Notes under the pieces: generated by a model | Databases searched by the model: none | The model's input: the letters and a program-made list of their open reading frames with translations, nothing else | Told to the model about the DNA's origin: nothing | Program-made: the position numbers and the translations under genes | IMG/VR virus record: IMGVR_UViG_3300005965_000002 | Span: 1 to 64,000 of that record | DNA: 64,000 bases | Reading direction: 5' to 3' (one strand) | Shown here: positions 2,141-36,861 of the stretch, one piece after another | Numbering within the stretch: position 1 is the stretch's first letter | Layout of the letters: each line of letters begins with the position of its first letter

Positions 2141-2172
2141 AGTATCTTAATGTATTTTTATAAATCTTTTTT

Positions 2173-3718: not shown

Positions 3719-3802
3719 GTCTAGCGTGTCTGCCGTTCCACCACTCAGGCATGTAAACCTCGTTAACAATATACTTATCTGTTTTTACTATTTAAACTAC
3801 AG

Positions 3803-4072
3803 CTAGCAATATTTGAAATTTTGAATAAGATATGCTATGTCTTTTGCTGCATGGACTTCGTCGGGTCCTTCCGCTCGAACTATGATAACTTCGCCTTGTA
3901 AGAAAGCAGCGGTAAGTATGTAGAGGATATTATTAGTTGGGAATATGTGAGGGTTTGTTTTTCTTCGAAGTGTTACTGTAGATTTGTAATTGCGGCAGGA
4001 AACAACGATATCACGGGAAGGCCTTGCGTGGATCCCTTTATCGTTGTTGATTCGTGCCTCAACCTCAAACAT
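3803..4072 (-). CDS. ptsH: HPr-family phosphocarrier protein
   Basis: GIHARP active-site motif; AEGPDE..A C-terminal motif. Confidence 0.85.
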   Translation of the reverse strand: MFEVEARINNDKGIHARPSRDIVVSCRNYKSTVTLRRKTNPHIFPTNNILYILTAAFLQGEVIIVRAEGPDEVHAAKDIAYLIQNFKYC

Positions 4073-4094
4073 AGAAGTCCTATTTTATTAGTAG

Positions 4095-4167
4095 TGGAGC
4101 TGCGGGGGTTCAAACCCCGGACCTCAACGCTGCCAGCGTCGCGCTCTCCCAACTGAGCTACCGCCCC
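4095..4167 (-). tRNA. tRNA-Ala(GGC)
   Basis: G3:U70 pair; loop CTGGCAG; tail CTA rather than CCA. Confidence 0.88.
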
Positions 4168-4205
4168 GGAATTTATAGTAGGCACAATTATGAATGAATT
4201 ATTAA

Positions 4206-4278
4206 AGCCGGTGGAGGGATTCGAACCCCCGACCAGAGGTTTACAAAACCCCTGCTCTGGCCACTGAGCTACACCGGC
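4206..4278 (-). tRNA. tRNA-Thr(TGT)
   Basis: Cloverleaf; loop TTTGTAA; no CCA. Confidence 0.92.
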
Positions 4279-4328
4279 ATTAAAAATATTCTATTATGGA
4301 AAACACTAAGGAAGGAATCAAGCCTATT

Positions 4329-4550
4329 TTATTTTTTGGACTTTGGCTTAATCAGTCCTTCTTCCATCTTTTTCTGCATTTCTAATTTTCTTTTGGCCGA
4401 TTCTCTTTGTACACGTTTTACAATACACGGCTTTTCGAATCTTCTTCTTTTCTTCATTTCAGAAAGAATGCCGCCATTATCAATTACTTTGGAAAAGCGC
4501 CTGATAGCTTTTTCAATATTTTCGTTATCTCTTATTCTGATGCCATTCAT
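4329..4550 (-). CDS. rpsU: ribosomal protein bS21
   Basis: ENIEKAIRRF...GILSEMKKRRRFEKP signature. Confidence 0.9.
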   Translation of the reverse strand: MNGIRIRDNENIEKAIRRFSKVIDNGGILSEMKKRRRFEKPCIVKRVQRESAKRKLEMQKKMEEGLIKPKSKK

Positions 4551-4575
4551 TTCGTTATTTGCTCCTAATAAAAAA

Positions 4576-4797
4576 AGCGGGGGGTGGGATTCGAACCCAC
4601 AGCGATTATCCCTAACCGGATTATTTTTCAGACGCTAGGGTTTCCGTTATTACGGTTCCTCATCATTGTTCGGGCTATAGCTAGCTCTGTTCAGGCCCGA
4701 ACCCAGGTAGAGGCGTGCAACCGGTCTCGCTTAACCCGGTCAGTTTGTTTTCTCCCGAACCTGGATGGGAGGCGTCTACCAATTCCGCCACCCCCGC
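4576..4797 (-). ncRNA. 222-nt tRNA-like RNA with ~140-nt structured insertion
   Basis: Acceptor GCGGGGG/CCCCCGC, Leu-type D arm, canonical T arm; several hairpins between anticodon-like arm and T arm. Confidence 0.75.
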
Positions 4798-4854
4798 TTA
4801 TTACTATAATATACCAATTCTATGGATGTTTTTAAAAAAATTATTAACAAATAA

Positions 4855-5715
4855 TTAGAATTCTACTAATTGGGTTTTCATTTTTCTTACAGTAGCATGG
4901 TGAAAAAGCTTTCTAATAGCTCTTTCTTTTATCTGTCTTACTCTTTCTCTTGTAAGATTAAGCTTATCTCCAATTTCTTGGAGATTATAGCAATGTCGGT
5001 CATATAGGCCAAAATGAAGCCTACATATCTCTTTTTCTCTTTCAGAGAGTACCTGCAACAACTCAGTTACTAATTTTTGAGTTGTCTCCGCGTGAAGAAA
5101 TTCGTTTGCAGTAATCGTATCTTGATCCTCCAGTGTATCTTTAACGGTTGCGTTTCCTTCCCCGATAGGAGAATCTATTGAGATATAAGGAGTATACATA
5201 GAATGAAGCCATTGGTACTCACTATAGCTATCGATATTAAGCTCAGCCATTATCTCCGAGGGTTCCGGTTCTCTCCTAAGCTCCTGCTGTAGCTTAATAA
5301 TGGCTTTCTTATACTGATCAAAAATAGGCACTCTGTTAATAGGTATCCGAGCAATCCTACTTTGGTTTGCTAACGCTTCTAAAACCTGCTGCCTAATCCA
5401 CCAGACAGCATAAGATATAAATTTATACCCTTTTTTATAATCAAACTTTTTAGCTGCCTTAATAAGTCCGATGTTTCCGATGTTAATCAGATCTTCTAAA
5501 GGCAACCCTTGATGCTGGTAAACACTTACTACATTTATCACAAAACGGAGGTTACCAAGAATTAGTTCTTCCTCGGCCTTTTTATCCCCTTTTGCTATAC
5601 GAATTGCCAGGTTTTTCTCTTGTTCATAGCTAAAATTTTTATATTTACTTATATCACAAAAGTAGATATCTAAAAGAGAATTACCGGTATCTGGTTTACT
5701 TTTTGTATTTTTCAT
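4855..5715 (-). CDS. sigma-70 (RpoD/RpoS-like) factor lacking region 1.1
   Basis: NLRFV, GNIGLIKAAKKFD, FISYAVWWIRQ, TRERVRQI; start moved to ATG 5715 because the upstream part of the track ORF is a tRNA. Confidence 0.92.
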   Translation of the reverse strand: MKNTKSKPDTGNSLLDIYFCDISKYKNFSYEQEKNLAIRIAKGDKKAEEELILGNLRFVINVVSVYQHQGLPLEDLINIGNIGLIKAAKKFDYKKGYKFISYAVWWIRQQVLEALANQSRIARIPINRVPIFDQYKKAIIKLQQELRREPEPSEIMAELNIDSYSEYQWLHSMYTPYISIDSPIGEGNATVKDTLEDQDTITANEFLHAETTQKLVTELLQVLSEREKEICRLHFGLYDRHCYNLQEIGDKLNLTRERVRQIKERAIRKLFHHATVRKMKTQLVEF

Positions 5716-5726
5716 AGTATAAAAAA

Positions 5727-5817
5727 TGGCGGAGGGTGAGGGACTCGAACCCCCAACACCCGAAGGTGACCGGTTTTCAAGACCGGAGCGGTCAACCAAA
5801 TTACGCTTTAACCCTCC
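5727..5817 (-). tRNA. tRNA-Ser(TGA)
   Basis: CCGGT-CTTGAAA-ACCGG, long variable arm, CCA. Confidence 0.92.
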
Positions 5818-6188
5818 TACTGTTTAGTCAAGATTCTCCAATGTTCGAATTTACCAAAAATATTGTTATTAAGGTATGTAGGTAGATTCTTTCTATCGCA
5901 TATAAATAGCAATTGGTATAGATCTTCCGTAAATGCTACTGTAGTTTCAGCGATGCCCTCTATAAAACAAATACCTTTATAGTTTGCTGTTGCCCCACTA
6001 TTAACGTCATACTTTCTTAAAAAATTCAAAAAACCTTCTAAGACTTCATGGTGGAAGCCCTCTTTCTCAAAAAGATAAACAAAAGGGTTTTTCTCCTTTA
6101 ACCTCTTTTCTTCATCTTTAAAGATTTCATAAAGGTCCCTTATATCTTCTTCCGTGTAATAGATAGGCTTAGTTATTGGCTTTTTCAT
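5817..6188 (-). CDS. hypothetical protein
   Basis: ORF track, RBS-like GAGG upstream. Confidence 0.55.
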   Translation of the reverse strand: MKKPITKPIYYTEEDIRDLYEIFKDEEKRLKEKNPFVYLFEKEGFHHEVLEGFLNFLRKYDVNSGATANYKGICFIEGIAETTVAFTEDLYQLLFICDRKNLPTYLNNNIFGKFEHWRILTKQ

Positions 6189-6532
6189 GCCTCGGTTTTA
6201 CCTCGTTATTTATTAGTATAACCTTTGGGTTCGTAACTCCTTGTGATAAATAAGAATAAAACCTTAAGCAGCTGTTGCATTCATACGTGTTAGCTCTTTT
6301 TTAGGCTCTTTTGTAGGAAAAGATCCTATACGAAAAACGTATTTTCCACACCGTGCACAATTTTTATTGACTCTTAGTGGCGTAGTCATGTTTTATCCTT
6401 TCTCTATATCATAATATACTAATTGGGTAAGATTATTTAAATTAGAATATTAGGCAGATATTAGTAATAATCTTCTAATCTTTTCCACTTTATTACTTGT
6501 AATGCTTATATAAATTTTATTGGGGTGAAACA

Positions 6533-7360
6533 ATGTTCGAATATTTACAAGGCTTACATCCTTTGCTTTCCTATTCTTTATCCACTCTCCTTGTAATAGC
6601 TGCGGTAATTATTTCTCTTTTTGCTAAAATAAAATGGGATAAACAATCTTTATCAATAGGCGGTACAGATGACGGAGATAAAAAGAATAATATTAAAGAA
6701 GCTAATCAAAAATCGAGTACCGTTAAGGTTCAGGAAAGAAATTGTATTGACTGCGTTTTTTATGTACTAGCATTAAGAGAGAAGTTTGAAATAGAATACG
6801 TGGCCGTAAAAGATAGCGTGTTAAAGGATCAGATGAATTTTGCTGAACAGAAGTTAAGCGAAGTCAAGACCACTGCTACCACTGAGTTTACTAAAAAATT
6901 GAAAGATCTAGAGCTTAATAAAAACGGAGATATTAGCATAGAAGAGCAATTTTTCAGGGAGACTACTCGTTACGAACTCTTCTGTAGTGTACTAAGAGAA
7001 GTAATGCATATTATTAAAGATGAAATAAGAAGATCCTTTAAGGAAAACGGTTATTTCGATTTTCAAGAAGGTGAGTTTTCTAACTACTTACGTAATAAAA
7101 TGGACTACTTAGAAAGTTTAGCTCTCAACCATTTTTCATCTCGTTATCCTTCATATAATAAAATTTTACCTCTTAGTGAGATCAAAGAAATTTACTTGGA
7201 TAACCGAAAAGAGCTAGAATCGACTTTAAGAGAAGTTTTTACAATTAGTAGAAGTATTAAGACTAAAGCGGATACAGAGGTTAAGAATAAAAAAGAAGAA
7301 TTCAAGAAAAGAATTGATAGCTTTATAAATAAAAGAAATAAAGCCCAGGATGAGGATTGA
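6533..7360 (+). CDS. hypothetical membrane-anchored helical protein
   Basis: N-terminal hydrophobic segment; preceded by the TAATAATCnnnTAAT motif. Confidence 0.65.
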   Translation: MFEYLQGLHPLLSYSLSTLLVIAAVIISLFAKIKWDKQSLSIGGTDDGDKKNNIKEANQKSSTVKVQERNCIDCVFYVLALREKFEIEYVAVKDSVLKDQMNFAEQKLSEVKTTATTEFTKKLKDLELNKNGDISIEEQFFRETTRYELFCSVLREVMHIIKDEIRRSFKENGYFDFQEGEFSNYLRNKMDYLESLALNHFSSRYPSYNKILPLSEIKEIYLDNRKELESTLREVFTISRSIKTKADTEVKNKKEEFKKRIDSFINKRNKAQDED

Positions 7361-7413
7361 ACTCACGACCCCTACCTTACCAAGGTAGTACTCTACCACT
7401 GAGCTACCTGGGC
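7342..7413 (-). tRNA. tRNA-Thr(GGT)
   Basis: Loop TTGGTAA; no CCA. Confidence 0.92.
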
Positions 7414-7417
7414 GTAA

Positions 7418-7495
7418 TGGGGTGACCGAGGGGAATTAAACCCCCAACCACCAGAGCCACAATCTGGTGCTCTACCCGGTTGAGCTACGGCCACC
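7418..7495 (-). tRNA. tRNA-His(GTG)
   Basis: Loop TTGTGGC; G-1:C73; CCA. Confidence 0.92.
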
Positions 7496-7836
7496 ATAAA
7501 TTCATTTATGCAGATTTTAAAATATTTGACAGATAGGAAATAATGTCTGTGCTCTCGTCAGCTCTGTTGCGGGGTAGCTTATGCAGTTTACTTAAAGCTT
7601 TCTCAACCGTCTCCCGGTCAATATCCATCGGCAGCTCATTTATCTTCTCAGGAGATAGTATTTTTACCTTGTAGTGTCCGTTTCCATTTGATGCGAATAA
7701 TACCTTTATGAGCTTACCCTGGTTGTAAAAAAATTCCTGGTAATTAGGTTTTGACATTCTTCGTCTCCGTTTGTATGATAGACGATAATAGAATGCCTAT
7801 TAAGAGATTATTAGTTGTGAACAAAATAACGAAAAA

Positions 7837-7912
7837 TGGCAGACCCGAAGGGACTCGAACCCCCAACCACTGGTTTTGGAGACCAGGACTCTACCAATTG
7901 AGCTACGGGCCT
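7837..7912 (-). tRNA. tRNA-Trp(CCA)
   Basis: CTGGT-CTCCAAA-ACCAG; CCA. Confidence 0.93.
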
Positions 7913-7914
7913 GT

Positions 7915-8811
7915 TTAATATCCTATTAATTTTCTCATTAAGTGTTTTCTATATCTGTTCATGATTTTGTGCCTACCCGCAGTTCTCCCTACGACTGTAT
8001 CTTCCGGTGCCCTCTCGTGGAGAAAGTGCTTAATGTATGTGTTTGTTATCAGCCTACACTCAACACCAGCAAACATAGAATCTACCCCAAAGGCCACGTC
8101 CTCATGGCCCCAGGATTTGAATTCAGTGTCATCGAAGTAGAATAGATCATCGTTTATTCTTCTTATTGCTTTTAAGCCTGGAACGTCTATTGCAAAGTTA
8201 CATGACCAAGTAATTCTACCTGTAAGGATAAGATCCATCTTCTCGTTAAATGAAGTCATTTTATTATACAGATCTACTATTCCTGAGATATCCCGATAAT
8301 CTTTATAATCGAGCTCGCGCTCAAAATAAAGGTTATCGTAAAGATTGTCGCTGTTCGAGTTCAAAAAAGAAGAGGGCATCTTATCTACTGGCATATAGCA
8401 ACAGGACTCATCGTCTTTTAAGAACTCTTCAAAATCTTCAGGCCGTTGTATATGCTCTCTCATTCCGTAGAAGCCCACACACTCACTACCATACTCTGAG
8501 AAAGCTTTCTCATAATTTTCTATAAAGTGTTTATTCGCTGGGAAAGAATCTCCGTCGAAGAATACCAGATAATTATTACCCATGGTGAGTGCTTTGTTGA
8601 TACCTATGTTTCTCCCCCGGGCTCTTCCTACTGATTTTTCATTACGGATCACTGTCACAAGGGTATCCACAATTGGGTAGAAAGGTTCTATGGAACCATC
8701 ATCTACGACAATGATGTTTCGAGGTAGTACTGTTTGCTCACAGAGTTTTGCTATTGCATAATTAACAAAATTTTGCTGATCTCGGCAAAGTATAATTACT
8801 GATGTGCTCAT
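7915..8811 (-). CDS. glycosyltransferase family 2
   Basis: SVIIL, IIVVDDGS, RNIG, FFDGD, WGHED motifs. Confidence 0.85.
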   Translation of the reverse strand: MSTSVIILCRDQQNFVNYAIAKLCEQTVLPRNIIVVDDGSIEPFYPIVDTLVTVIRNEKSVGRARGRNIGINKALTMGNNYLVFFDGDSFPANKHFIENYEKAFSEYGSECVGFYGMREHIQRPEDFEEFLKDDESCCYMPVDKMPSSFLNSNSDNLYDNLYFERELDYKDYRDISGIVDLYNKMTSFNEKMDLILTGRITWSCNFAIDVPGLKAIRRINDDLFYFDDTEFKSWGHEDVAFGVDSMFAGVECRLITNTYIKHFLHERAPEDTVVGRTAGRHKIMNRYRKHLMRKLIGY

Positions 8812-9010
8812 TATTTTACCAATTTAGCTTCTTTTCTAAGTACCTTTTTTCCATTATCATAGTCGTACTTAATTATATAGTCTTCATCGTTAGCTGGGCA
8901 GCTTACAAGTATATGATCACCAAAATCTCCTAAGATAGTATCTTCCTCAGTGAAGATATAACCAGTGTCTGGATCCTGTGGATATTTGGAATAGTCTAGT
9001 TTAAAACAAT

Positions 9011-11026
9011 TCATTTTTTCTTCCCATATGTTTTTCTTTTAAATTCAATAGGATTACATTCCATATCAAACATTCTCTTACATGCTGGAAAACCTGAGCA
9101 CCCTCCAAATTCTTTACCTGTCTTTGTAGACTTGCGGATAGCAACGGGCTTTCCGCACTTATCACATTTAAAAGGTTTTCCCGAGGAGTCCTTTAAGTAG
9201 TTAACTTTTTTAACGACGGGGGAGCCGTCATCACCTATTTGAAAGGTGGCTTTGCATTTAGCCTTGCCTTTTTCCATAAATCCGGCACATCCGTAGAACT
9301 CCCCATAGCGACTTTTTCGTATTACTAACTTATGAGTTTTACATATAGGACAGACAATATCTGTCTCTTCTGCTTTCTTCATACTTTTTGCTGTTTTTGC
9401 TGCGCCGATTCTTTTTTGTAATTCGCTGTAAAAATCATCTACAGTTTCATACCATACTAACGTACCCGCAGCTATCTCATCAAGTTTATCTTCGATACGG
9501 GCGGTATATTTTGTGTCCATTAATTCGGGGAATGCCCCCTTAAGAAAGTCGCTTACTGTTGTCCCGAGTTCTGTAGCTATAAACTTTTTGCCTTGTCTTT
9601 CAACATATGCTCGTTTTATTAAAGTGTCGATAATGGAAGCATACGTGGAAGGTCTACCCACACCGTTTTCTTCTAATGTCTTCACCAGGGAGGCATCATT
9701 GTAGTGTGGCGGCGGTTGGGTAAAATGCTGAGAAGGATCCACTACTAAAAGATTCGAATCCTCTCCCTTATTTATTTCAGGCAAGATCTGATCTTTAGAA
9801 GAGCCGAAGGACCAAACTTTTAAGAATCCGTCGAATTTTAACTTCTGACCGCTTGTCTGGAACTCATGCTTTTTCGACCCGCTTTCGACGGTAATCTTCA
9901 TCGTGTCGAAGATTGCGCTCTCCATTTGACTAGCTACAAATCTTTGGTAAATACCTTTATATAGTTTTATCTCGTCCGGAGAGTTAGCATTCACTACATT
10001 TAAGTCAGTAGGTCTAATGCCCTCATGAGCTTCCTGAGCAGATTTGGATTTAGTTTTAAATAAGCGAGGTTTAGAAGGTAGATATTTATTACCATAGGAC
10101 CCCTTTATATGGTCTCTCACAGCGACCATAGCTTCTTTACTAATATTTAGTGAGTCGGTCCTCATGTATGTGATTAGTCCGCTTTCATACAACTTCTGAG
10201 CTACGCTCATCGTTTTTTTACCAGGCCAGCCGTAAACAGCGGAAGCAAATTGTTGTAAAGATGAGGTGTTAAAGACAGGATAGGGGCTACGGGTTTTCTC
10301 AGATTCCTTTACATCTTTAATTTTCCAGGAATCCTCAGCCTTTATAGAATCGACAACTTCTGTAGCTTCTTTTTCGTTTTTAATCTTTTCTTTTTTTACA
10401 TAAGAAGCCTTAAAGCTATCCTTACGAGGAGTAGCAAAAGTCCCCTCAATTTCCCAATACTCCTCGGGTTTAAAGGCGTCTATCTCTTTTTGTCTCTCTG
10501 CTATGAGCATCAACCCAATAGATTGTACCCTACCGGCGCTCGTACCCTTACATACTTTTCTCCACAATACAGGAGAAACACCATATCCTACTAGCCGGTC
10601 CAGTACAGCACGGGCTTGCTGTGAGTGATACATTTCTTCATTCAGATCGCCTGGATTGGCAAAGGCTTTATGTATAGCTGATTTTGTGATCTCATGAAAT
10701 GTGGTGCGTTTGATAGGGCAAGCGTTTTTAATAGCAAATTTAGCTAGATGCCAGCCAATTGCTTCTCCCTCTCTATCAGGGTCAGAAGCTATGTAGCAGA
10801 GACTGCTTTTCTTAGCCGCCTCTTTGATCTCTTTTATTACCTTACTCTTTTTTTCAGCTATTACATATTTAGGCGCGTACTGGTTATCAACATCAATCGA
10901 AAGCCCTTTAGGATCTATTTGGTAACAGTGCCCAAAGGAAGCTTTAACCACGTACCCGGATCCCAGGTAGCTTTGTATTTTTTTAATCTTCGCAGGACTC
11001 TCAACAATAACTAAGATCTTTCCCAT
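9011..11026 (-). CDS. topA: DNA topoisomerase I (type IA) with C-terminal zinc ribbons
   Basis: IVESPAK, DPDREGE, SAGRVQS, ITYMRTDS, GRPST motifs. Confidence 0.97.
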   Translation of the reverse strand: MGKILVIVESPAKIKKIQSYLGSGYVVKASFGHCYQIDPKGLSIDVDNQYAPKYVIAEKKSKVIKEIKEAAKKSSLCYIASDPDREGEAIGWHLAKFAIKNACPIKRTTFHEITKSAIHKAFANPGDLNEEMYHSQQARAVLDRLVGYGVSPVLWRKVCKGTSAGRVQSIGLMLIAERQKEIDAFKPEEYWEIEGTFATPRKDSFKASYVKKEKIKNEKEATEVVDSIKAEDSWKIKDVKESEKTRSPYPVFNTSSLQQFASAVYGWPGKKTMSVAQKLYESGLITYMRTDSLNISKEAMVAVRDHIKGSYGNKYLPSKPRLFKTKSKSAQEAHEGIRPTDLNVVNANSPDEIKLYKGIYQRFVASQMESAIFDTMKITVESGSKKHEFQTSGQKLKFDGFLKVWSFGSSKDQILPEINKGEDSNLLVVDPSQHFTQPPPHYNDASLVKTLEENGVGRPSTYASIIDTLIKRAYVERQGKKFIATELGTTVSDFLKGAFPELMDTKYTARIEDKLDEIAAGTLVWYETVDDFYSELQKRIGAAKTAKSMKKAEETDIVCPICKTHKLVIRKSRYGEFYGCAGFMEKGKAKCKATFQIGDDGSPVVKKVNYLKDSSGKPFKCDKCGKPVAIRKSTKTGKEFGGCSGFPACKRMFDMECNPIEFKRKTYGKKK

Positions 11027-11285
11027 TTATACCTCATATGATTTGTCGTATCAATTCATTAAGTTCTGGCTCACCATACCAAAAAAAATATTGGTAATTT
11101 TCATAACTGATGTATATTATTCCTACTTCTTTTTTTATGTGTTTTCTCAAATGATCTATTACAGAGGGAGTACACATAGATACTCTTAAAGAGGCTATAA
11201 TGTGGCTCGGGAATTCTTTTATAGCATCCCGGACTCTCCTGTATATTTTTTCTTTTTCTGTAATATATCGATTCATAAGAAATAA

Positions 11286-11361
11286 TGGTGGAGCCGGTCG
11301 GGATCGAACCGACGACCGCTAGCTTGCAAAGCTAGTGCTCTCCCAATTGAGCTACGGCCCC
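11286..11361 (-). tRNA. tRNA-Ala(TGC)
   Basis: Loop TTTGCAA; G3:U70; CCA. Confidence 0.94.
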
Positions 11362-11645
11362 TTATTCAGAAAAATTGGCAGAATTCTTTATATGTTTTTT
11401 AGTTTCTATTCTATTGACTAATATCCCAATGAGGTTTGTAAAAGAATTTACCTCAGTAGCTTCAACGTAATAGCAGCCCCCGCCGAGAGCCGGTTCAATG
11501 TTGAAAAGGATACCCATCCATAAGCCGGTTACAGGGTCCTGGGCAATCTCTCTAACGAGCCATCCTTTAGGTATAAGGCTAAGGACGCTTTCTTCTTGAT
11601 TTTTGGGTTTGCTTTTAAAAAATGAAAACATAGGCATTTAATTGT

Positions 11646-11731
11646 TGGTGCTCCGGGGGAGACTCGAACTCCCAAGGGCAGTGCCCGCCAGATTTTGAAT
11701 CTGGTGCGTTTACCAATTCCACCACCGGAGC
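11646..11731 (-). tRNA. tRNA-Leu(CAA)
   Basis: CCAGA-TTCAAAA-TCTGG; CCA. Confidence 0.93.
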
Positions 11732-12406
11732 TAAAGAATGATTGTTTTGCTTTCTCTACAAGTTTCTTCCAAACGGTTGTACTCAGTTTTGGGTACTGTC
11801 TGTGTGCGGTACTGATGATATGAGGCGATACCCATTCCAAGAAGAAGGATGCTGAGGAGAGCAGCACTTATGAATAAGCCATCACCTGACGTGGCTGCTA
11901 AAGCTACTGAAAGAATGACAATAAAAAAGAGGAAAGAGATAACTATTACTAAAAAAATAGGTAGCATACTAGTCCTTTTTTGAGGCGTCGCGCTTATAGA
12001 TATCACATTTAGATATACCACATTTGCTGATGCCCTCTAGTGTTCTTTGTTCCAGGTCAGAATAGTCTTCCCACGGAATAATCGGGGTAAATGATTCTTT
12101 GGCTTTCTTCCCCATCTCAGTACGGCTTTGAATATTTTCTATGTTAGGCTTATCCAATGTTATTCCTTTACTTCTCCTGAAAATATGTGATTGTCGCATT
12201 TAACTACATCATCTTGACAGGTATCTTTTAGTACCGGATGATGCCCTCTAAATTCAGGATTGCTCATGCATTTAGGCCATTTATCAGTATGGTCACACAT
12301 AATGCATAAATTAGGTAATGTAGCTAATTCATTCATAAATACTTCCTGAAAAAATGGTACTCGGGACGAGATTCGAACTCGTACGGGGTTACCCCCAATG
12401 GATTTT

Positions 12407-13174
12407 CTTACTACTCTTGCTTTCACAAGCCGCTATAACGTTGTAGTCTGGACTATATCATCTCCTTAGTAAAACCTTAGGAGGGACGTGCATAGTCTCT
12501 GAACCTTCCCCATTTTAAAGGGGCTCGGCTGCTGATTACCCAATCTCTGATAGTTTTTTAACTTTCACACCCGCTGTTTTCAGCCATGTTGTAGTCATCT
12601 GAGCTATAAGGGCTTTCCAGCAATTCTCGTCCTGCTCACCTATTGATTTCTCAATAAGGGCTCTTTGATCCCTTATAAAAAAGTGAAGCCTGCCATGCTG
12701 CATCCTACTAATAATTATCATGTTACTTAAAGAGTTGTCTTTTATATCACCGTTAATATGATGAATAACTTCGTTATAAGAAAGTTTTCTCTTCAAAACT
12801 TGTTCAGCTATTACCCGGTGTATATCTTTAGAACTTCCTTTAAGTTTATTGTAATTACCAGTAGCATTGTTACCTATTTTTGAGACTTTTCTATAGCATT
12901 CTAAACAGTACTTTTGGTCTTTGTGGTTTAGCTTAATTTTTTTAGTGCATAAAACACAAAATCCCCAACCGTATCTATTTTTGTAAGCCGCTCCTCCTTT
13001 TTGAAGATAAAAATATTTACGTCTTTCTAGGTAACAAGGATTACAGTATCGTCTTCCTTTTGTTGGCGGGATCTTTTTACATTTAACACAAAGCCTCTCC
13101 ATAATAACTCCTTTTATTGGAAGGACCAATATTAGGAGATTATGGTGGACACAACGTGTCAAGTGTAAAAAACA
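12407..13174 (-). ncRNA. group I intron (768 nt) in anticodon of tRNA-Leu(TAA)
   Basis: After U34, ends ...AGTAGTAAG; TCAGAGACTA and GATATAGTCC core elements. Confidence 0.9.
12536..13102 (-). CDS. intron-encoded HNH homing endonuclease with zinc fingers
   Basis: HRVIAE..L.R.L...EVIHHING...DN...N motif; CxxC pairs; start at ATG 13102 with RBS GGAG. Confidence 0.85.
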   Translation of the reverse strand: MERLCVKCKKIPPTKGRRYCNPCYLERRKYFYLQKGGAAYKNRYGWGFCVLCTKKIKLNHKDQKYCLECYRKVSKIGNNATGNYNKLKGSSKDIHRVIAEQVLKRKLSYNEVIHHINGDIKDNSLSNMIIISRMQHGRLHFFIRDQRALIEKSIGEQDENCWKALIAQMTTTWLKTAGVKVKKLSEIG

Positions 13175-13268
13175 AAGTCCACAGTGTCTACCATTCCACC
13201 ACCCGAGCATGTCAAAGATCATCTCATATGAATATACTCCTTTGATTATTCTAATTAAAGTAAAAAAG

Positions 13269-13352
13269 TGCGGAGAAAGGGACTCGAACCCTTAATCTCA
13301 TTTAGAGAATTAGCTCCTCGGGCTAACGTGTATACCATTCCACCATCTCCGC
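13269..13352 (-). tRNA. tRNA-Leu(GAG), with C33
   Basis: TTAGC-CCGAGGA-GCTAA; no CCA. Confidence 0.88.
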
Positions 13353-13393
13353 AATTATCTTTTGATATCCTTTTGTAGAAAAAGGAGATATGT

Positions 13394-13825
13394 ATGATAA
13401 TCAAAAAACTGGAAAAATATGCTTCTATCTTAGAAGATAGAGGTATGAAAAAGCAGGCTTTTGAAATAGATTTAATTTGCAATAGCATAGAAAAAGCAGC
13501 TTTTAAGTTTCCATGGACTAAGAAAAAAGAGCAAGACAAAGCTGAACTTGAGCAACTTATAGGTGACCGGGTAAAGAGCGATAATAAGTTTCTGGCTAAT
13601 AAGATTGAGATCTATGATCGTCAAAAAAACTTTTCTTCTGAGGGCCGCGTAAGGACCAAAAACCCTCCTAAAGAATTTAAGAACAAGTTTGTTGAGGGTC
13701 CAGATGGGTATTGGTACCTTCAGGATGATAGAGCGATGAGCGTACAGAAGTTTCCAGATAAAATGGTTCTATACGATGACTCTAAAGACCTTGGCGTACC
13801 GGTCCAAGGGTTAGAGATAATGTAA
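13394..13825 (+). CDS. hypothetical protein carrying the recurring LExKGxxKxAxxxD motif
   Basis: RBS AAGGAG; N-terminal motif shared with ORFs 24393, 27907 and 57509. Confidence 0.7.
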   Translation: MIIKKLEKYASILEDRGMKKQAFEIDLICNSIEKAAFKFPWTKKKEQDKAELEQLIGDRVKSDNKFLANKIEIYDRQKNFSSEGRVRTKNPPKEFKNKFVEGPDGYWYLQDDRAMSVQKFPDKMVLYDDSKDLGVPVQGLEIM

Positions 13826-13931
13826 AGACCGACCTCAGCTTCATAGGTTTAGCGTTGTTTCGCCTGCCACGCCTCAGCAGAGGGCCCGGGGTTCTGCGGG
13901 CCCAGGCGCACTTCCTGGTTTCTGGTCTTTA
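13823..13931 (-). ncRNA. putative structured small RNA within the tRNA array
   Basis: GC-rich island closed by TAAAGACC/GGTCTTTA; internal GGGCCC hairpin whose loop GCAGA matches downstream TCTGC. Confidence 0.55.
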
Positions 13932-13940
13932 ATGTAAAAA

Positions 13941-14025
13941 TGGGAGCACTAGGACTCGAACCTAGGAAGGCCGCTACAGCCGCCGGAGCTACAATCCGGT
14001 GCATTCGCCGCTATGCTATACTCCC
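13941..14025 (-). tRNA. tRNA-Tyr(GTA)
   Basis: CCGGA-TTGTAGC-TCCGG, long variable arm; no CCA. Confidence 0.9.
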
Positions 14026-14041
14026 TTAATCGGTAGTTAAA

Positions 14042-14124
14042 TGCTGACGGAGAGACTCGAACTCTCATGAGCATAAGCCCACCAGGTCCTGAACCTGGCG
14101 TGTCTACCATTCCACCACATCAGC
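14042..14124 (-). tRNA. tRNA-Leu(CAG)
   Basis: CCAGG-TTCAGGA-CCTGG; no CCA. Confidence 0.92.
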
Positions 14125-14130
14125 GAAAAA

Positions 14131-14204
14131 TGGAGACGGGATCGGGATTCGAACCCGAGATGGGAGTTTTGCAGACTCCTGCCTTACCGCTTGGCTATCC
14201 CGTC
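14131..14204 (-). tRNA. tRNA-Cys(GCA)
   Basis: GGAGT-CTGCAAA-ACTCC; U73; CCA. Confidence 0.93.
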
Positions 14205-14290
14205 TTAAAAGGAAGACTCTATGAAACAGAGTCTTCCCTCTATATAAAAAGGACAATTTCCTAACTAATGTGCCTATCAATGCGTCAAAA

Positions 14291-14308: not shown

Positions 14309-14458
14309 CTATCGAGTTTTGATGATCTTCACTCGATCTATTCTTTTTCTAACTTCTTCTTCAGGCATCATAGCTACCATACGCCGAGCTTGAGCCTTGC
14401 TTACACAAATTCTTTTTTCAATCAATCCGTCAATGAGTTCGTTTTTCTTATCTTCCAT
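14309..14458 (-). CDS. 49-aa protein with S4-like motif (not in ORF track)
   Basis: RBS AGGAGG; MEDKKNELIDGLIEKRICVSKAQARRMV... Confidence 0.55.
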   Translation of the reverse strand: MEDKKNELIDGLIEKRICVSKAQARRMVAMMPEEEVRKRIDRVKIIKTR

Positions 14459-14474: not shown

Positions 14475-14715
14475 AAAAAACCCCTCCCAGGTTTGCTGGA
14501 AGGGGTTTTTCTAACTATCGGTATCTTTTGCTTATTTCGTTAGAAGTTCCTCCCAGCTACTATTGTATTCGCACAGAGATATGAATACAATAAGGTCCAT
14601 GCGGCTGATGTCAGCACGGTATGCAAGGACTGTAGTGTGGAGGATGTCGATTTCATTTCTTTTTTCCCTTAAACAAGTTCATTCCTAATATACCTTTTTT
14701 TCGCTGGATATTCAA
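14475..14715 (-). promoter_or_regulatory. attenuator 1: promoter TTGAAT-N17-TATATT, leader ORF 14656-14540, antiterminator, terminator 14510-14475
   Basis: Leader MKSTSSTLQSLHTVLTSAAWTLLYSYLCANTIVAGRNF; GCTGGGAG..TTCTAAC pairs with GTTAGAA..CTTCCAGC of the terminator 5' arm. Confidence 0.85.
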
Positions 14716-14926
14716 AGAATTTTTTCCAGCTTTTCTTTTTGGTATGGAACCGAATAGATTCGCTTCCTTCAAATTATATTCTTCTCTAATCTTAATCAGC
14801 ATCTCTTCAGGGATAGAATCCGGGACACATAGACTTAGTAAGTCTATGAAATTAAAGGTAGTACGCAACTGCTCTCTTGAGGTACATCCCTTTATCATCC
14901 TAATACATTTCGAGTAGACGGCGTCT

Positions 14927-21612: not shown

Positions 21613-21699
21613 TGGCGGAGGGTGAGGGATTTGAACCCCCGTGCCCTTTCGGACGCTTGTTTAGCAAACAAGTGGTTTTACCGATTCACCCAACCCTCC
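21613..21699 (-). tRNA. tRNA-Ser(GCT)
   Basis: CTTGT-TTGCTAA-ACAAG; long variable arm; CCA. Confidence 0.93.
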
Positions 21700-21725
21700 G
21701 TTATCCTTGTACCGGAATGTATATA

Positions 21726-21996
21726 TTAGACCAAGCAAATGGATATGAATGTGCTTGGGGGTAGAACTTCTAACATTAATTTTCTTCCGCCCTGATTGAG
21801 GGAATGGACATAAACTTCTGGCGGACATCTATCTAAATTCCTTGATAGCCATTCTGCTACCTCGTATCCGGTACCCTCTCCGGAAGGGACATAGACTTTA
21901 CCGTCTAAGTCGTGATCAAGATATAAAAGATCCCACAAATTTGCGACGAAATAGCTTCATCCTATCCAAATCATCTTCGAGTATTAAAACATTCAT
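21726..21996 (-). pseudogene. cyclic-phosphate-processing receiver-like domain, frameshifted or internally deleted
   Basis: MNVLILEDD..R in one frame; LDHDL..GTGYEVA.WL..HSLN in another. Confidence 0.6.
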
Positions 21997-22502
21997 GAGC
22001 ATGCTTTCATAATTAAATAGCTATCAATTTTTCTTTTAATGTTGTCTATATGTTTGTCCAGACTCCAAGAAATATCTTCACCTAATTCTGGGTGGATAAG
22101 ATTTAGCTGAATAAACACATCTTTTTCTCTTTTATACCCGGGTTCTACGCCGACTGCAATCTCATGTAGATAGTCAGCTTTGTATTGTCTAAGGGCTACC
22201 TGTCTGCCGAGTTCATACATGCAAATAGGCTGGTCGCTAGGGGCATCGCTAAACCACATTGAAAATATGTCACATTGGTTTAGTGCGTGGAATTCCCAAG
22301 TAATTTGTTCCTCAGAAGCGTTTGGGTCATCGATAGGAAAGTTTTCTCTCCGAGGATTTAAAATGATACAATCAGTACCTTCTAATCCTTTGATTACTTC
22401 ATCCTGCCAATTTGGGCAGTTTGTTATACCTCCGGCTAAAAACACGGAAGGTAATCCTTGTACCCCCAACGTAAACGGACGAGGAGCTGTGTACAGTATC
22501 AT
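21993..22502 (-). CDS. nucleoside 2-deoxyribosyltransferase-like protein
   Basis: VFLAGGI..CPNWQ, LNPRR, QITWE, ELG motifs. Confidence 0.8.
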   Translation of the reverse strand: MILYTAPRPFTLGVQGLPSVFLAGGITNCPNWQDEVIKGLEGTDCIILNPRRENFPIDDPNASEEQITWEFHALNQCDIFSMWFSDAPSDQPICMYELGRQVALRQYKADYLHEIAVGVEPGYKREKDVFIQLNLIHPELGEDISWSLDKHIDNIKRKIDSYLIMKACS

Positions 22503-23616
22503 TTTATCTCCTGGAAAATCCCATGGTTTTATTTTTATTTTTTATCTGATTTAGAGTGTACTTCAGCTTTATAATTGCATTTGCGTAAACAGAAAAAGCT
22601 GTAATCAGGTTAGCAGTCAGCATTAAAATATAGGCTGCTTTCGCAAATGCTTTTTTTGTTCTCATATTGAGCATTACTGTTGGACCTCAAACACCTCTTC
22701 ACAGAGATGGTAGCTGTCTCTTTTTTCTTTTGCGATGGCTCTACATTTATCGCATTCGCCATCAGGCTTCCTATGCACGCAAACTACATTCTCATAAAGA
22801 GGATCCCAGGTTACGTAAACCTTTTCTTTATCTTTATTGTGTGAGTAGGATTTCTGAGCCTCAAGTACCCAACCGATATTTAAATTAAAAAGATGCTCAA
22901 GAGAATCGTACTCTTTATCTGGTATATGTCCCTTTAGGGGTATTAACCGACCAACACAGCTAGTCCAGTATCTACCCTCCCCCAAGGATTGTAAATCATA
23001 ATAGTAGTCATCTTTATCCGTTTTGAAATCTATCAAACGTACTACCGTCGTTCCGTCTATCAGCAGATCACCTTTATGTTTTTCAACAAACTGGATTAAA
23101 TCAGTTTTAGAAGATTGAGGGAAGTATGAATCGCAATCTTTGAGGTTGGTTTCTTCCTCGGCGCATTCAGATTTGGGGAGAGGAGTTACTTCGCCGGTTA
23201 GATATTCAAACTTATATCTGCAGGATTCACAAGGACCCTTCATACGTCATTCCTTTTCCATCCGTAGTTAAAAATAAACCAGTCTGCAGCTTTTTTTAGT
23301 TCTGTTTTTCTTCTCGATGATGGGAAGCGAAGCATCTCAAGTCGAGCTTCTTTGGTTTTGTACCAATAATCTACAAGCCAGTCATGAAATGAGATCTCTT
23401 CTTTTTTATTCCATGTGTGTGAGCAGTACCATTGGGGGTCAAAGAAATCAACATCTTCATATTTGACATTTACTCTGCTACACATTTCTTTCAGTGCCGC
23501 TTTTACATGGGTTCCAAACTCTCTTTTTTGAGGTTTATCTTGAGTGTCCATAGATATCTCCTTTTCAAAGCACAGAATAATGTATTATTTGGAGATCCGT
23601 ATTTAAAGAAAATTAG

Positions 23617-23688
23617 AGAAGAAGGCAGGAATCGAACCCACGCCTTCTCCCGGACAGGGAGTGTTCAACCAGCTTAAACTACTTCTTC
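23617..23688 (-). ncRNA. atypical tRNA-Asp(GTC)-like RNA
   Basis: Acceptor GAAGAAG/CTTCTTC, normal T arm, anticodon arm CTCCC-TGTCC-GGGAG (5-nt loop). Confidence 0.6.
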
Positions 23689-23872
23689 TCTAACATAGAG
23701 GCGGCTAAGGCCTTCAGGTGGCTACAAGGTTTTTCCTTGTTATCCATATTTATCACGCAACCACAAACTGTGCAGATTACGTTTGATACCTTAAGTGTGT
23801 GGGTTTCTACTCGTTCGAAGGCTTTTTTAATTTCTTCTACATCAATAGTCATATTATATTCTCCTAAAAAAA

Positions 23873-23947
23873 TGGCGGGCCCACGGAGAATTGAACTCCG
23901 GTTACGAGATTGACAGTCTCGCGTCCTAGCCACTAGACGATGAGCCC
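23873..23947 (-). tRNA. tRNA-Asp(GTC)
   Basis: CGAGA-CTGTCAA-TCTCG; CCA. Confidence 0.93.
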
Positions 23948-23953
23948 TTAAAC

Positions 23954-24031
23954 TGGTAGGGACGCCCGGGATTGAACCGGGGACAACGCGGATTTTCAGT
24001 CCGCTGCTCTACCAAACTGAGCTAAGTGGCC
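23954..24031 (-). tRNA. tRNA-Phe(GAA) with mismatched (chimeric) acceptor stem
   Basis: GCGGA-CTGAAAA-TCCGC; 5' GGCCACT versus 3' CGTCCCT has 3 mismatches. Confidence 0.75.
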
Positions 24032-24081
24032 TTAAATTTATTTTAAAGCCACTAAAGTCAGAATCTCCCATCATTGCCTCC

Positions 24082-24304
24082 AAAAAGAGAAACCCCGCTG
24101 AACTTTCGCTCGGCGGGGTTTCTCTTGAATTCACTTTTATAAAAAGTTATCTTCGAGACCCCCGCCCGGGCATAATATCATCGCCACTATCAAAATCGAT
24201 AGCGCTCATGCTGATGATAAAAATGCTGGTTACGATAGTCATTGAAGATAAACTCCTATTCATTGGTTCGTTTCTAATATACCCTTTTGTTACAAGGAAT
24301 TCAA
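24082..24304 (-). promoter_or_regulatory. attenuator 2: promoter TTGAAT-N17-TATATT, leader ORF 24242-24147, antiterminator, terminator 24126-24082
   Basis: Leader MTIVTSIFIISMSAIDFDSGDDIMPGRGSRR (RBS AGGAG); GGCGGGGGTCTC pairs with GAGAAACCCCGCC. Confidence 0.85.
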
Positions 24305-24392
24305 ATACTTTTTTCAGAAAGTTTAGGAACCCATTAATAATCTTATAATATTTTCTTGTTATAAGATATTTTCTGTAAAGAGGGGCTACATA

Positions 24393-26543
24393 ATGGATTG
24401 GGTAGGATTAAGTTTATTTGGATATAGAGAAGCTGCAAGAAAATTTAAAAAACCTGCAGATCTTCAGTCTATACTAAAGACCATCAATATCACCTCAGAA
24501 CAATTTGAAGAGATTCGAAAAGAGGTGGCTCAAAAAGATACAGCCGGGTTAAAAGTAACTGCTCAGACTTCTGGGGCTATTGAATTATATGATCCGATCA
24601 TCACCTACCTTACTTGGATAGTACTACACGACAAGTTTAAATCTAAAAAAGAAAAGCCTGAATATCCTACTCACCAAGAATATGATTTCTTTCATGATTT
24701 ATTAGTTGCTGGTAAATTTGATGATATAAGAAAAATCATATCTAATGATAATGTTCCTCGTAACCAGCTACAGCAATATATACAGAAATTTCAGTCTTCC
24801 AATAAGTCAGATAATAAGCTCACCAAAGAAGATTTGAAAGTTTTAAATAATAAAAAAGAAGTAGTTGATTTAGGGGGAGGGTGGTCTTGGATAACCCTAG
24901 TAGATGATCAAGGCAACATAAAAGGTGGTTCTACGGTACTTACTAAAATACTAGGTCACTGTGGTAACGGTGAAGGTTTACCTGGAGATAAAATGTATCT
25001 ATTAAGTAATAAAACCATGGGACTTATACCTACTATCAAAGCTACAGTTATTGTTGATGGTGAAGGAAAAATCAGGGAGTCTAAGGCTTCTTTCAATAGA
25101 AAGATAAACATTAATAAATATGGGGGTGCCTTCTTAAAACTTCTTGAGCAACCTTTCGTAAAAGGCCTAGACGATAGTGGTGCTTACATGGCTGATTCAA
25201 ATCTCCATATGAGTGACTTTTCTGGTACTCCTTTTGAAGAACAAGCCAAGGCTCTTATAGAGAAAAAACCTAATCTTATGAATAATGATTTTGATCAAGT
25301 TATTACTAAATATAAAGATGAAGTATCAAGTCTCTCCCCAGAAGATAAAAAAGACGAATTACGGAAATTATTAGAAGATGGTCATATAAATTTAGTACAA
25401 GCTCGCGCCTTGAATGGCGGAAAATTTCCCTTTACAGACGACGAGTTGGTCGGTATGATTGATGGGGGATTAGATATAGGAAAGATAATTTCTGCCGGTA
25501 ATAGCTTATTTAGCCTTAAAGTGCAGCAAGCTTTAGCAAAAAAAGATCCTTCAAAAAACATCTCTTACATGCTTTACATGGCAGCTACTTTAAATAACAG
25601 TCCTATAGATAAAAAAATTCTTATAGAGGGTCTTAATTCCGCAAAAAAATTTAAAATGAATAGCTTTGCAGGTGATGTAGGAGATGAGACAAAAAATAAA
25701 TTAACTTCTTACTTGAAAAAGAATACTGATTTATTGTCCGCTTATCTTAAGAAAGATCCCTCGGCTATAGATTATTTCCCTGAAGACCAGCGAATGCATA
25801 TATTTAATAAAATGCCCGAGGCGTTCGCCGAAGTGTTTAAAAAAGTTCCTTCGGCTATACGTTATTTCCCTGAAGATAAAAGGATGGATATCTTTAACCA
25901 AATGCCCGAGGCGTTCGCCGAAGGGTTTTATGAAGACCCCTCGTCTATTGGTTATTTCCCTGAAGATAAAAGGATGGATATCTTTAACCGAATGCCCGAG
26001 GTGTTCGCCGAAGGGTTTAAAGAAGTTCCTTGGTCTATAAGTTATTTCCCTGAAGATAAAAAGATGGATATCTTTAACCGAATGCCCGAGGCGTTCGCCG
26101 AAGGGTTTAAAAAAATTCCTTCGGCTATAGGTTATTTCCCTGAAGACCAACACGGTTATATAAAGGAAACTATAAGAAAAATAAATGAGAAGAATAGAAC
26201 AAAGGAAGCGGCTACTATGAACAAGATATCTACCCTGTTAGACACAATAGCCAACCGATTGGAAGCAAAAGGCCTAATTAAGGAAGCTTTCAGCTTAGAT
26301 ACAATAGCAAATACTCTTGAAAAATGTGCTGCTATAGATCCATATGCGGCTACCTTGATAGCCCATGCAAAAGGTAATATGAATCAAATTCAGCAAGCTG
26401 CTCAAGATGTTAAGCAACTAGGGAAGAAAGGTATAGAATCGGTAGGCCCTGTAGAAGAAGTATTAGAAAAGCATAACTTAACTTTAAAGTCCAAGGATGA
26501 GGCTGCTTTAGAAAATCTTTGTGCTAATCTTTTAAAGATCTAA
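24393..26543 (+). CDS. large hypothetical protein with 30-aa tandem repeats and the shared motif near the C-terminus
   Basis: 716-aa ORF; preceded by TAATAATCTTATAAT. Confidence 0.75.
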   Translation: MDWVGLSLFGYREAARKFKKPADLQSILKTINITSEQFEEIRKEVAQKDTAGLKVTAQTSGAIELYDPIITYLTWIVLHDKFKSKKEKPEYPTHQEYDFFHDLLVAGKFDDIRKIISNDNVPRNQLQQYIQKFQSSNKSDNKLTKEDLKVLNNKKEVVDLGGGWSWITLVDDQGNIKGGSTVLTKILGHCGNGEGLPGDKMYLLSNKTMGLIPTIKATVIVDGEGKIRESKASFNRKININKYGGAFLKLLEQPFVKGLDDSGAYMADSNLHMSDFSGTPFEEQAKALIEKKPNLMNNDFDQVITKYKDEVSSLSPEDKKDELRKLLEDGHINLVQARALNGGKFPFTDDELVGMIDGGLDIGKIISAGNSLFSLKVQQALAKKDPSKNISYMLYMAATLNNSPIDKKILIEGLNSAKKFKMNSFAGDVGDETKNKLTSYLKKNTDLLSAYLKKDPSAIDYFPEDQRMHIFNKMPEAFAEVFKKVPSAIRYFPEDKRMDIFNQMPEAFAEGFYEDPSSIGYFPEDKRMDIFNRMPEVFAEGFKEVPWSISYFPEDKKMDIFNRMPEAFAEGFKKIPSAIGYFPEDQHGYIKETIRKINEKNRTKEAATMNKISTLLDTIANRLEAKGLIKEAFSLDTIANTLEKCAAIDPYAATLIAHAKGNMNQIQQAAQDVKQLGKKGIESVGPVEEVLEKHNLTLKSKDEAALENLCANLLKI
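25758..26150 (+). repeat. 90-nt (30-aa) tandem repeat, 4 full copies plus 1 partial
   Basis: TATTTCCCTGAAGA recurs at 25773, 25863, 25953, 26043 and 26133. Confidence 0.95.
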
Positions 26544-31041: not shown

Positions 31042-31081
31042 TGATAGTCATTAATATACCTTTGTGATATATTTATTTTAA

Positions 31082-36852: not shown

Positions 36853-36861
36853 TAATTCACC

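Follow-up and report, generated by a model that had tools for sequence, protein, structure and literature searches.

Codon-matched leader ORFs and candidate attenuators upstream of tRNA gene blocks in an uncultured 258-kb phage

Large phages can carry dozens of tRNA genes, and how these genes are regulated is an open question. In the DNA studied here (the window; 64,000 nucleotides), a short minus-strand ORF lies upstream of 15 tRNA genes, and the sequence-only reading had proposed that this single 38-codon leader holds a codon for each of them and acts as an attenuator. Does the match hold, and does it indicate control of the tRNA genes? We found that the match is correct and that the locus is one of five units of the same build, which together partition all 39 tRNA genes of the phage. 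Judged from sequence and computation alone, without RNA data, each unit is probably a ribosome-mediated transcription attenuator.

A leader ORF matched to 15 downstream tRNAs, and four further units

The window is the first 64 kb of a single 258,580-bp contig with 38.6% G+C, from a hypersaline-lake or microbial-mat metagenome. All of its tRNA genes lie on the minus strand between 2 and 59 kb, in an arm of minus-strand genes that also encodes a CCA-adding enzyme, topoisomerase I, a sigma-70-type factor, PRPP synthetase, and homing endonucleases. No cultured phage is close; the best match to the CCA enzyme in the phage collection is 33% identical.

We first examined the leader ORF and its tRNAs. 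The ORF has 38 sense codons and a TAA stop, exactly as the sequence-only reading gave it, and the span it had delimited, 14475-14715, matches the unit almost to the base. ARAGORN called 12 of the 15 downstream tRNAs with the expected anticodons. It miscalled a 13th as Ala-CGC, but this gene has an anticodon stem CCGGT/ACCGG and loop CTTGAAA, so it is Ser-TGA. The remaining two, Leu-TAA and Leu-TAG, are split by group I introns after position 34 (Rfam RF00028), and ARAGORN called both once they were spliced in silico. Every one of the 15 anticodons has a cognate codon in the leader, even under the strict rule that TTA is required for Leu-TAA and CTA for Leu-TAG. Of codons 3-29, 25 of 27 are block codons, the exceptions being CAG and GTG. 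Among about 517,000 windows of 37 codons in all six frames of the genome, only three loci reached 15/15; this locus is the only one on the minus strand, and it holds 15/15 over 17 consecutive window offsets. The leader has 27 of 37 block codons against 12.0 expected (binomial p = 5e-7).

We next searched the minus strand for strong hairpins followed by T-runs. The best ones were located just upstream of tRNA groups, at 59600, 48435, 41127, 24086, and 14480, and upstream of each is a short ORF whose peptide mirrors the tRNAs that follow (Table 1, units A to E). All five units have the same parts in the same order: a sigma-70-type promoter, a Shine-Dalgarno-like purine run 5-10 nt before the ATG, a leader of 22-38 codons, a spacer of 23-30 nt, a G+C-rich hairpin of -16.9 to -28.5 kcal/mol followed by T5-T8, and then the tRNAs. 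The promoter is TTTGAA-N16-GGTATATTA (TTTGTA in unit C). Searched genome-wide with at most one mismatch per box, this motif has eight minus-strand hits, and five of them are these units.

Table 1. Coordinates of the five units and their tRNA blocks in the window.
Unit	Feature	Position	Strand	Sequence or content
E	Whole unit	14716..14475	(-)	
E	Promoter	14686..14716	(-)	TTTGAA (14716..14711), 16-nt spacer, GGTATATTA (14694..14686); predicted transcription start near 14679
E	Shine-Dalgarno	14670..14665		AAGGGA
E	Leader ORF	14540..14656	(-)	38 codons, MKSTSSTLQSLHTVLTSAAWTLLYSYLCANTIVAGRNF
E	Segment 1	14645..14628		Outer 1:2 helix, pairs with the segment-2 region
E	Inner 10-bp hairpin, candidate pause hairpin	14561..14592	(-)	TATTGTATTC (14592..14583) and GAATACAATA (14570..14561)
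E	Segment 2	14548..14557	(-)	GCTGGGAGGA; ends 6 nt before the stop codon
E	Intrinsic terminator	14475..14505	(-)	CCCCTTCCAG-CAAAC-CTGGGAGGGG (14505..14481), 25-nt hairpin, -17.8 kcal/mol; T6 (14480..14475)
E	Second strong hairpin with TTTT, 17 bp	14237..14211		Directly before tRNA-Cys
E	Block E, in order of transcription	2056..14204	(-)	Cys-GCA, Leu-CAG, Tyr-GTA, Leu-GAG, Leu-TAA (intron), Leu-CAA, Ala-TGC, Trp-CCA, His-GTG, Thr-GGT, Ser-TGA, Thr-TGT, Ala-GGC, Leu-TAG (intron), Ser-GGA; interspersed with protein genes (topoisomerase I, a sigma-70-type factor, a glycosyltransferase, an HNH endonuclease)
E	Leu-TAA exons	13208..13175 and 12406..12355		
E	Ser-TGA	5817..5727		
E	Internal promoter of the same type	4837..4807		
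E	Leu-TAG exons	3750..3717 and 2924..2875		
A	Whole unit	59593..59785	(-)	
A	Promoter	59785..59755		
A	Leader	59725..59657		MIATTTIRIEGREGEGEGTIMS
A	Segment 2	59661..59651		
A	Terminator hairpin	59626..59601		Followed by T8
A	Block A	59314..52753		Glu-TTC, Glu-CTC, Gly-GCC, Met-CAT, Gly-TCC, Thr-CGT, Arg-CCT, Arg-TCT
B	Whole unit	48430..48638	(-)	
B	Promoter	48638..48608		
B	Leader	48569..48486		MLMIVKKVKVVVKRRKGSHRGEFRLFI
B	Segment 2	48514..48506		
B	Terminator	48459..48436		Followed by T6
B	Block B	48125..45564		Lys-TTT, Lys-CTT, Arg-ACG, Val-TAC, Arg-CCG
C	Whole unit	41122..41312	(-)	
C	Promoter	41312..41282		
C	Leader	41262..41182		MFIMNQNNPNPQQPRTEGSLGGILLA, stop TAG
C	Segment 2	41211..41200		
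C	Terminator	41154..41128		Followed by T6
C	Block C	41082..30968		Asn, Gln-CTG, Asn, Gln-TTG, Pro-GGG, Pro-TGG, suppressor tRNA with anticodon CTA
D	Whole unit	24082..24305	(-)	
D	Promoter	24305..24275		
D	Leader	24242..24147		MTIVTSIFIISMSAIDFDSGDDIMPGRGSRR
D	Segment 2	24172..24154		
D	Terminator	24124..24087		Followed by T5
D	Block D	24033..21613		Phe-like tRNA, Asp, Asp, Ser-GCT

Each leader is enriched in the codons of its own block. Own-block codons are 12/21 in leader A (p = 1e-4), 11/26 in B (p = 2e-4), 10/25 in C (p = 5e-4), 10/30 in D (p = 6e-3), and 27/37 in E. The leader-by-block matrix is diagonal, each leader scoring highest on its own block, and 38 of 39 tRNAs are covered: 8 of 8 in block A, 4 of 5 in block B, where CGG for Arg-CCG is absent, and all six sense tRNAs in block C. 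The match holds at the level of the anticodon. Leader A uses ACG, AGG, and AGA, exactly the Thr and Arg codons whose tRNAs are in its block, and leader B uses CGC and CGT, read by Arg-ACG. In leader D the four Ser codons upstream of segment 2 are all AGC or AGT, read by Ser-GCT, whereas leader E uses only TCN for Ser. The regulatory stretches rank at 3e-5 to 2e-3 of all stop-free windows in the genome, and in a blind scan of 67 small ORFs upstream of tRNAs the top four were leaders E, C, A, and B. Leader C ends in TAG and its block holds the CTA suppressor. Recoding of TAG was rejected: dropping TAG as a stop lengthens ORFs no more than dropping TGA does, and TAG ends 17% of long ORFs.

Competing pairings and conservation of the units

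In all five units the 3' end of the leader ORF (segment 2) is complementary to the 5' arm of the terminator (segment 3), the layout of a ribosome-mediated attenuator. Segment 2 either overlaps the stop codon or ends 5-18 nt before it. The 2:3 duplexes are -13.2 to -23.3 kcal/mol, with shuffle p of 0.029, 0.051, 0.005, <0.001, and 0.012 for units A to E (combined 1.3e-6); the energies are -16.3 kcal/mol in unit C, -23.3 in D, and -13.3 in E. Own-block codons make up 69/107 codons upstream of segment 2 and 1/32 within or after it (Fisher p = 1e-10), so that they lie where a stalled ribosome would free segment 2. To test whether the pairings could switch, we folded each unit with a 30-nt ribosome footprint. 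With the ribosome about a third of the way into the ORF (about 35% in unit E) and the 3' arm not yet made, the antiterminator formed in all five units, whereas with the ribosome at the stop codon the terminator formed. The 1:2 duplex is -11 to -15 kcal/mol in units A, C, D, and E but weak in unit B (-4.5 kcal/mol).

Relatives from other samples keep units B, D, and E. A Logan contig, L125, has a CCA enzyme 87% identical to that of the window and carries units D and E. Its leader E, MKSINSTTMTLHTALTAAAWSLLYSCLYVDTKAGRKI, differs at 15 of 31 aligned codons and has a 3-nt in-frame indel, yet it still covers all 15 anticodons. CTA and CTG have moved to other positions, and TGT and TAT, inside the inner hairpin, have swapped. 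Random change of the same size keeps full coverage with probability 0.01 (point substitutions) or 8e-4 (codon replacement). Segment 2 and the terminator hairpin are identical, the T-run being one T shorter, and the promoter boxes are conserved while the spacer diverges. The inner hairpin lies just 5' of the antiterminator segment and is kept in L125 (12 bp in its fold) despite changed bases, although the 1:2 duplex is weaker there; this fits a 1:2 hairpin or the pause site that the sequence-only reading had suggested. In the window, the 111-aa ORF upstream of unit E runs through the promoter to an ATGA overlap with the leader, but in L125 that gene ends inside the -35 box. The overlap therefore looks incidental, and translational coupling through it was rejected as a designed feature.

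In L125, unit D is followed by Phe, CAT, CAT, Ile-GAT, Asp, Asp, and Ser-GCT. The Phe-like gene of the window has a Phe-type 5' part and the 3' end of that Ile gene, with a mismatched acceptor stem. A deletion in the lineage of the window therefore explains the otherwise unmatched Ile and Met codons of its leader D. The first half of L125's leader D holds Asn, Tyr, Lys, Leu, and His codons that its block does not explain. Unit B is present in two further contigs, L126 and L128, whose flanking glycosyltransferase is 75% and 71% identical. The regulatory core of leader B and the terminator stem are identical to the base, without even a synonymous change in the core, while the 5' UTR and promoter spacer diverge. 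Indels in the ORFs of the relatives stay in frame (3, net 15, and 9 nt). In L126 the first tRNA begins 12 nt after the T-run, which leaves no room for another promoter.

Near and distant DNA searches of the phage collection with the locus returned only tRNA hits, and IMG/VR scans with the 111-aa neighbour, the promoter motif, terminator E, and the unit D core gave either nothing or single chance matches. Relatives found by the CCA-adding enzyme at about 50-58% identity (L001, L002, L129, L130) are not syntenic and have no tRNAs nearby. A metagenome scan returned only the window's own contig and a near-identical copy with 1 mismatch in 15.6 kb. The 245-aa protein upstream of unit C has no homologue other than itself, so no relative was obtained for units A and C; a 92%-identical contig from DNA runs aligned to 40100-42100 spans unit C but allowed no conclusion.

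We then examined other phages. LR756501.1 is an unrelated, uncultured phage record of 735,411 bp with 66 tRNA matches in minus-strand arrays; its size matches the largest genome described in PMC7162821, and we infer that the two are the same. Each of five arrays is preceded by a promoter-like motif, a Shine-Dalgarno site, a small ORF, and a T-run terminator, and the peptides again mirror the arrays: MNFRIINMIQEQMQQIQNLIGGTISY at locus L133 (Met, Gln, Ile-TAT, Glu), MKNMVRKYNDYCINDKLKMLIG at L134 (Ile, Cys, Asp, Asn, Tyr), MNNILHINLLNSLCLLGIKLIG at L135 (five Leu), MLQTSKHSKHFSSSSKWFTTFGVETDLLCVS at L136 (Trp, His, Phe, Lys, Ser), and MLFNSNISVKFTPAPAVAFRRGTGTGTGTCVPAGCGFEGMNG at L137 (Arg, Thr, Val, Ala, Gly, Pro). 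The diagonal of its matrix ranks first of 120 permutations, and all five 2:3 duplexes have p <= 0.011. In a 10-by-10 cross test, each terminator arm paired best or nearly best with its own leader. At L136 the gap between the T-run and the first tRNA is 30 nt, again leaving no room for another promoter. KVP40 and Atu_ph07 gave no signal. XacN1 has two suggestive ORFs without T-run terminators, and Microcystis phage MaAM05 has only 3 tRNAs.

A probable attenuation mechanism and its alternatives

These results suggest that the units are ribosome-mediated attenuators placed in front of phage tRNA genes, and we consider this reading likely, although leader translation, termination, read-through, and the sign of the response are inferred and, with the host unknown, transcription-translation coupling cannot be assumed. 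In the inferred mechanism, RNA polymerase starts at the unit promoter and a ribosome loads on the leader. If the tRNAs for the codons of the block are plentiful and charged, the ribosome runs to the stop codon and covers segment 2, the terminator (3:4) forms, and transcription stops before the tRNA genes. If any of those codons is read slowly, perhaps because host tRNA is scarce, uncharged, or defence-cleaved or phage tRNA is not yet made, the ribosome stalls in the regulatory stretch, disrupts the 1:2 helix, and leaves segment 2 free to pair with segment 3, so that polymerase reads into the tRNA block and its co-transcribed genes. Without any translation, the 1:2 and 3:4 helices would form and transcription would terminate. 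The net effect would be a codon-family-specific negative feedback on the supply of phage tRNA. It should be noted that the blocks run 3-12 kb through many protein genes, and that block E contains an internal promoter and a second hairpin with TTTT before its first tRNA; the leader may therefore not control every tRNA in its block. On a broader reading, which we regard as somewhat more likely than not, some huge phages of at least two unrelated lineages carry a previously unrecognised class of codon-barcoded leader peptides, each of which tests whether the infected cell can decode the codon families served by one tRNA array and opens transcription of that array only when it cannot. The phage would thereby keep the tRNA supply steady codon family by codon family, for example after host tRNA loss or cleavage by anticodon nucleases.

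An alternative that is unlikely but survives best is that the leaders do sense decoding of the block's codons while the output differs from classical attenuation, for instance Rho-dependent polarity, control of processing or stability of the tRNA precursor, or the opposite sign, in which efficient translation promotes read-through as positive feedback once the phage tRNAs work. The sign and the output are inferred from folds only, and the candidate ORFs in XacN1 are followed by hairpins without T-runs. Unit D has a second conserved small ORF after the terminator, with Asp, Ser, and Phe codons, that runs into the first tRNA, and read-through of the TAG of leader C would carry the ribosome 15 nt closer to the terminator. 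However, all ten well-defined units of the two phages have canonical intrinsic terminators with T-runs, and in all ten a segment 2 at or just before the stop codon competes for the terminator's 5' arm, a geometry that predicts termination when the leader is fully translated.

It is more doubtful still that the units are independent genes for small proteins or small RNAs and that the tRNA genes are transcribed from elsewhere. A promoter, a short ORF, and a terminator are also the anatomy of a small-protein gene, units A, B, and E are followed by another small ORF before the first tRNA, and some leaders look hydrophobic. On the other hand, the peptide sequences turn over quickly while codon content, frame, and RNA pairing are kept, the core of leader B is invariant even at synonymous sites, segment 2 is complementary to the terminator's 5' arm in 10 of 10 units, the gaps in L126 and L136 leave no room for another promoter, and no Pfam family matches; this reading also gives no reason for each peptide to mirror the tRNAs that follow. 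Chance is very unlikely: although the block was chosen after the ORF had been seen, its codon set is large (32% of codons in long ORFs), and two plus-strand loci also reach 15/15, the design is replicated five times with a shared promoter and a different block each time (product of the five binomial p values about 1e-20), is kept through sequence turnover in relatives, and recurs in LR756501.1, and the negative controls KVP40 and Atu_ph07 gave nothing.

Comparison with known systems

In the papers searched, we found no report of leader-peptide attenuators before tRNA genes or in phages, and the huge-phage survey does not use the words attenuator, leader, or terminator (PMC7162821). The mechanism belongs to a known kind; what appears new is the target (tRNA arrays), the multi-anticodon barcode in the leader, and its use as a set of five that partitions the whole tRNA repertoire of a phage. 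The elements suggest that the phage measures decoding speed for each codon family and supplies tRNAs on demand, which would extend leader-peptide attenuation, known for amino-acid operons and one synthetase operon, to tRNA genes themselves, to viruses, and to leaders that sense up to 15 anticodons at once. The leaders also act as an internal annotation, indicating which tRNAs belong to one transcription unit and which a block used to contain. The units are compact (about 200-240 nt) and might serve as codon-specific sensors.

The tRNA clusters of the cultured phages T4, KVP40, Atu_ph07, and XacN1 likewise contain many tRNA genes on one strand, interspersed with small ORFs and homing endonucleases, but the KVP40 and Atu_ph07 arrays are not sorted by amino acid and show no codon-matched upstream ORF. 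T-box riboswitches also sense the tRNA status of a specific codon or anticodon and switch between a terminator and an antiterminator upstream of translation-related genes. A T-box, however, binds uncharged tRNA directly through a specifier codon and a conserved T-box sequence, without translation, whereas here there is a Shine-Dalgarno site, an ATG, and a conserved reading frame, and cmscan of the whole window at gathering threshold returned only tRNA and group I intron matches, with no T-box and no leader family (Trp_leader, His_leader, Leu_leader, Thr_leader, and others).

In the pheMST attenuator of E. coli, a component of the translation apparatus rather than a biosynthetic enzyme is apparently controlled by a leader peptide, PheM, that senses decoding of the cognate codon. 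That system controls phenylalanyl-tRNA synthetase, senses one amino acid, and is a host gene, whereas here the tRNAs themselves would be controlled and many codon families sensed at once. The leader-peptide attenuators of amino-acid biosynthetic operons (trpL, hisL, leuL, thrL, ilvL, pheL of Enterobacteria) typically combine a promoter, a short translated leader rich in regulatory codons, an intrinsic terminator, and mutually exclusive 1:2, 2:3, and 3:4 pairings read out by ribosome position, and multivalent leaders seem to be represented among them (thr for Thr and Ile; ilv for Ile, Leu, and Val). In the phage units, the downstream genes are tRNA genes rather than biosynthetic enzymes, the leader carries one to a few codons for each of up to 15 different anticodons instead of a run of one codon, the elements are phage-encoded and occur as a set of five, and segment 2 lies at the very end of the ORF.

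Additional hits of the unit promoter

A sixth promoter (TTTTAA-N16-GGTATATTA) of the same type as those of the five leader units directly drives an RNA of about 221 nt. This RNA has a tRNA-like acceptor stem, D-arm, and T-arm, but carries about 150 extra nucleotides where the anticodon and variable region would be. It encodes no CCA and ends in a T7 run. It was not called by ARAGORN, and no significant match was found in Rfam. Outside the window, another hit of the unit promoter is followed by GGAGG and a minimal ATG-TGA start-stop ORF.

Coordinates of the additional features. L125 is a Logan contig representing a relative.
Feature	Record	Coordinates	Strand
Sixth promoter and the RNA it drives	window	4577-4837	-
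Sixth promoter	window	4837..4807	-
RNA of about 221 nt	window	4797..4577	-
Intron-bearing tRNA-Leu(TAA) and tRNA-Leu(TAG)	window	12355-13208 and 2875-3750	-
HNH endonuclease ORF in the first intron	window	within 13222..12536	
184-aa ORF overlapping the second intron	window	3164..3718	opposite
Gene called tRNA-Phe	window	23954-24033	-
Amber-suppressor-type tRNA and end of leader C	window	30968-31041 and 41182-41184	-
Second small ORF after terminator D	window; L125	24030-24075; 1913-1985	-; +
17-bp hairpin upstream of tRNA-Cys	window	14211-14237	-
49-aa ORF before this hairpin	window	14458..14309	
Tandem 90-nt repeat	window	about 25740-26150	
716-aa ORF containing the repeat	window	24393..26543	plus
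Promoter hit with minimal ORF	genome, outside the window	66629-66659	-
Two small ORFs of Xanthomonas phage XacN1	AP018399.1	30428-30469 and 46104-46229	+

Unusual tRNA genes

Both tRNA-Leu(TAA) and tRNA-Leu(TAG) carry a group I intron after anticodon position 34. The first intron holds an HNH endonuclease ORF, whereas the second overlaps an ORF on the opposite strand. The gene called tRNA-Phe looks like a chimera: its 5' part, with anticodon GAA, is Phe-like, whereas its T-arm and 3' acceptor strand are identical to those of the tRNA-Ile(GAT) of the relative L125. The acceptor stem does not pair, which suggests a deletion that removed two CAT-anticodon tRNAs and Ile-GAT.

The phage also encodes an amber-suppressor-type tRNA (anticodon CTA), although it uses TAG as an ordinary stop (17% of long ORFs, with no sign of recoding). 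Leader C, whose block contains this tRNA, is the only one of the five leaders that ends in TAG, although on its own this is not statistically significant. Read-through would add four codons and stop at a TAA 15 nt closer to the terminator.

Elements near terminators and a tandem repeat

Directly after the terminator of unit D, a second small ORF with a strong Shine-Dalgarno site (GGAGG) starts and runs into the first tRNA gene. Its opening codons, GAT TCT GAC TTT AGT GGC TTT, are conserved in L125, and its codons again match the tRNA block of unit D (Asp, Ser, Phe). Directly upstream of tRNA-Cys, and after an ORF that is conserved in L125, lies a hairpin of about -25 kcal/mol followed by TTTT. 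This hairpin could be a second terminator, or a 3'-end stabiliser for the upstream mRNA after RNase P cleavage. Self-matches at offsets of 90 and 180 nt (about 86% identity) point to a tandem repeat inside a long plus-strand ORF.

Small ORFs before tRNA genes in Xanthomonas phage XacN1

In XacN1, two small ORFs mirror the tRNAs that follow them. MNKPYYKRYYAKA lies before Lys, Lys, and Tyr, whereas MNAIHIDNRADRFISIIADDSVSARVDSFSVVAVDSSNKQE lies before Phe, Asp, Ile, Ala, Val, His, Ser-GCT, and Arg, and five of the six Ser codons of the latter are AGY. Both ORFs are followed by hairpins without T-runs. They may be a variant of the same idea in a cultured phage.
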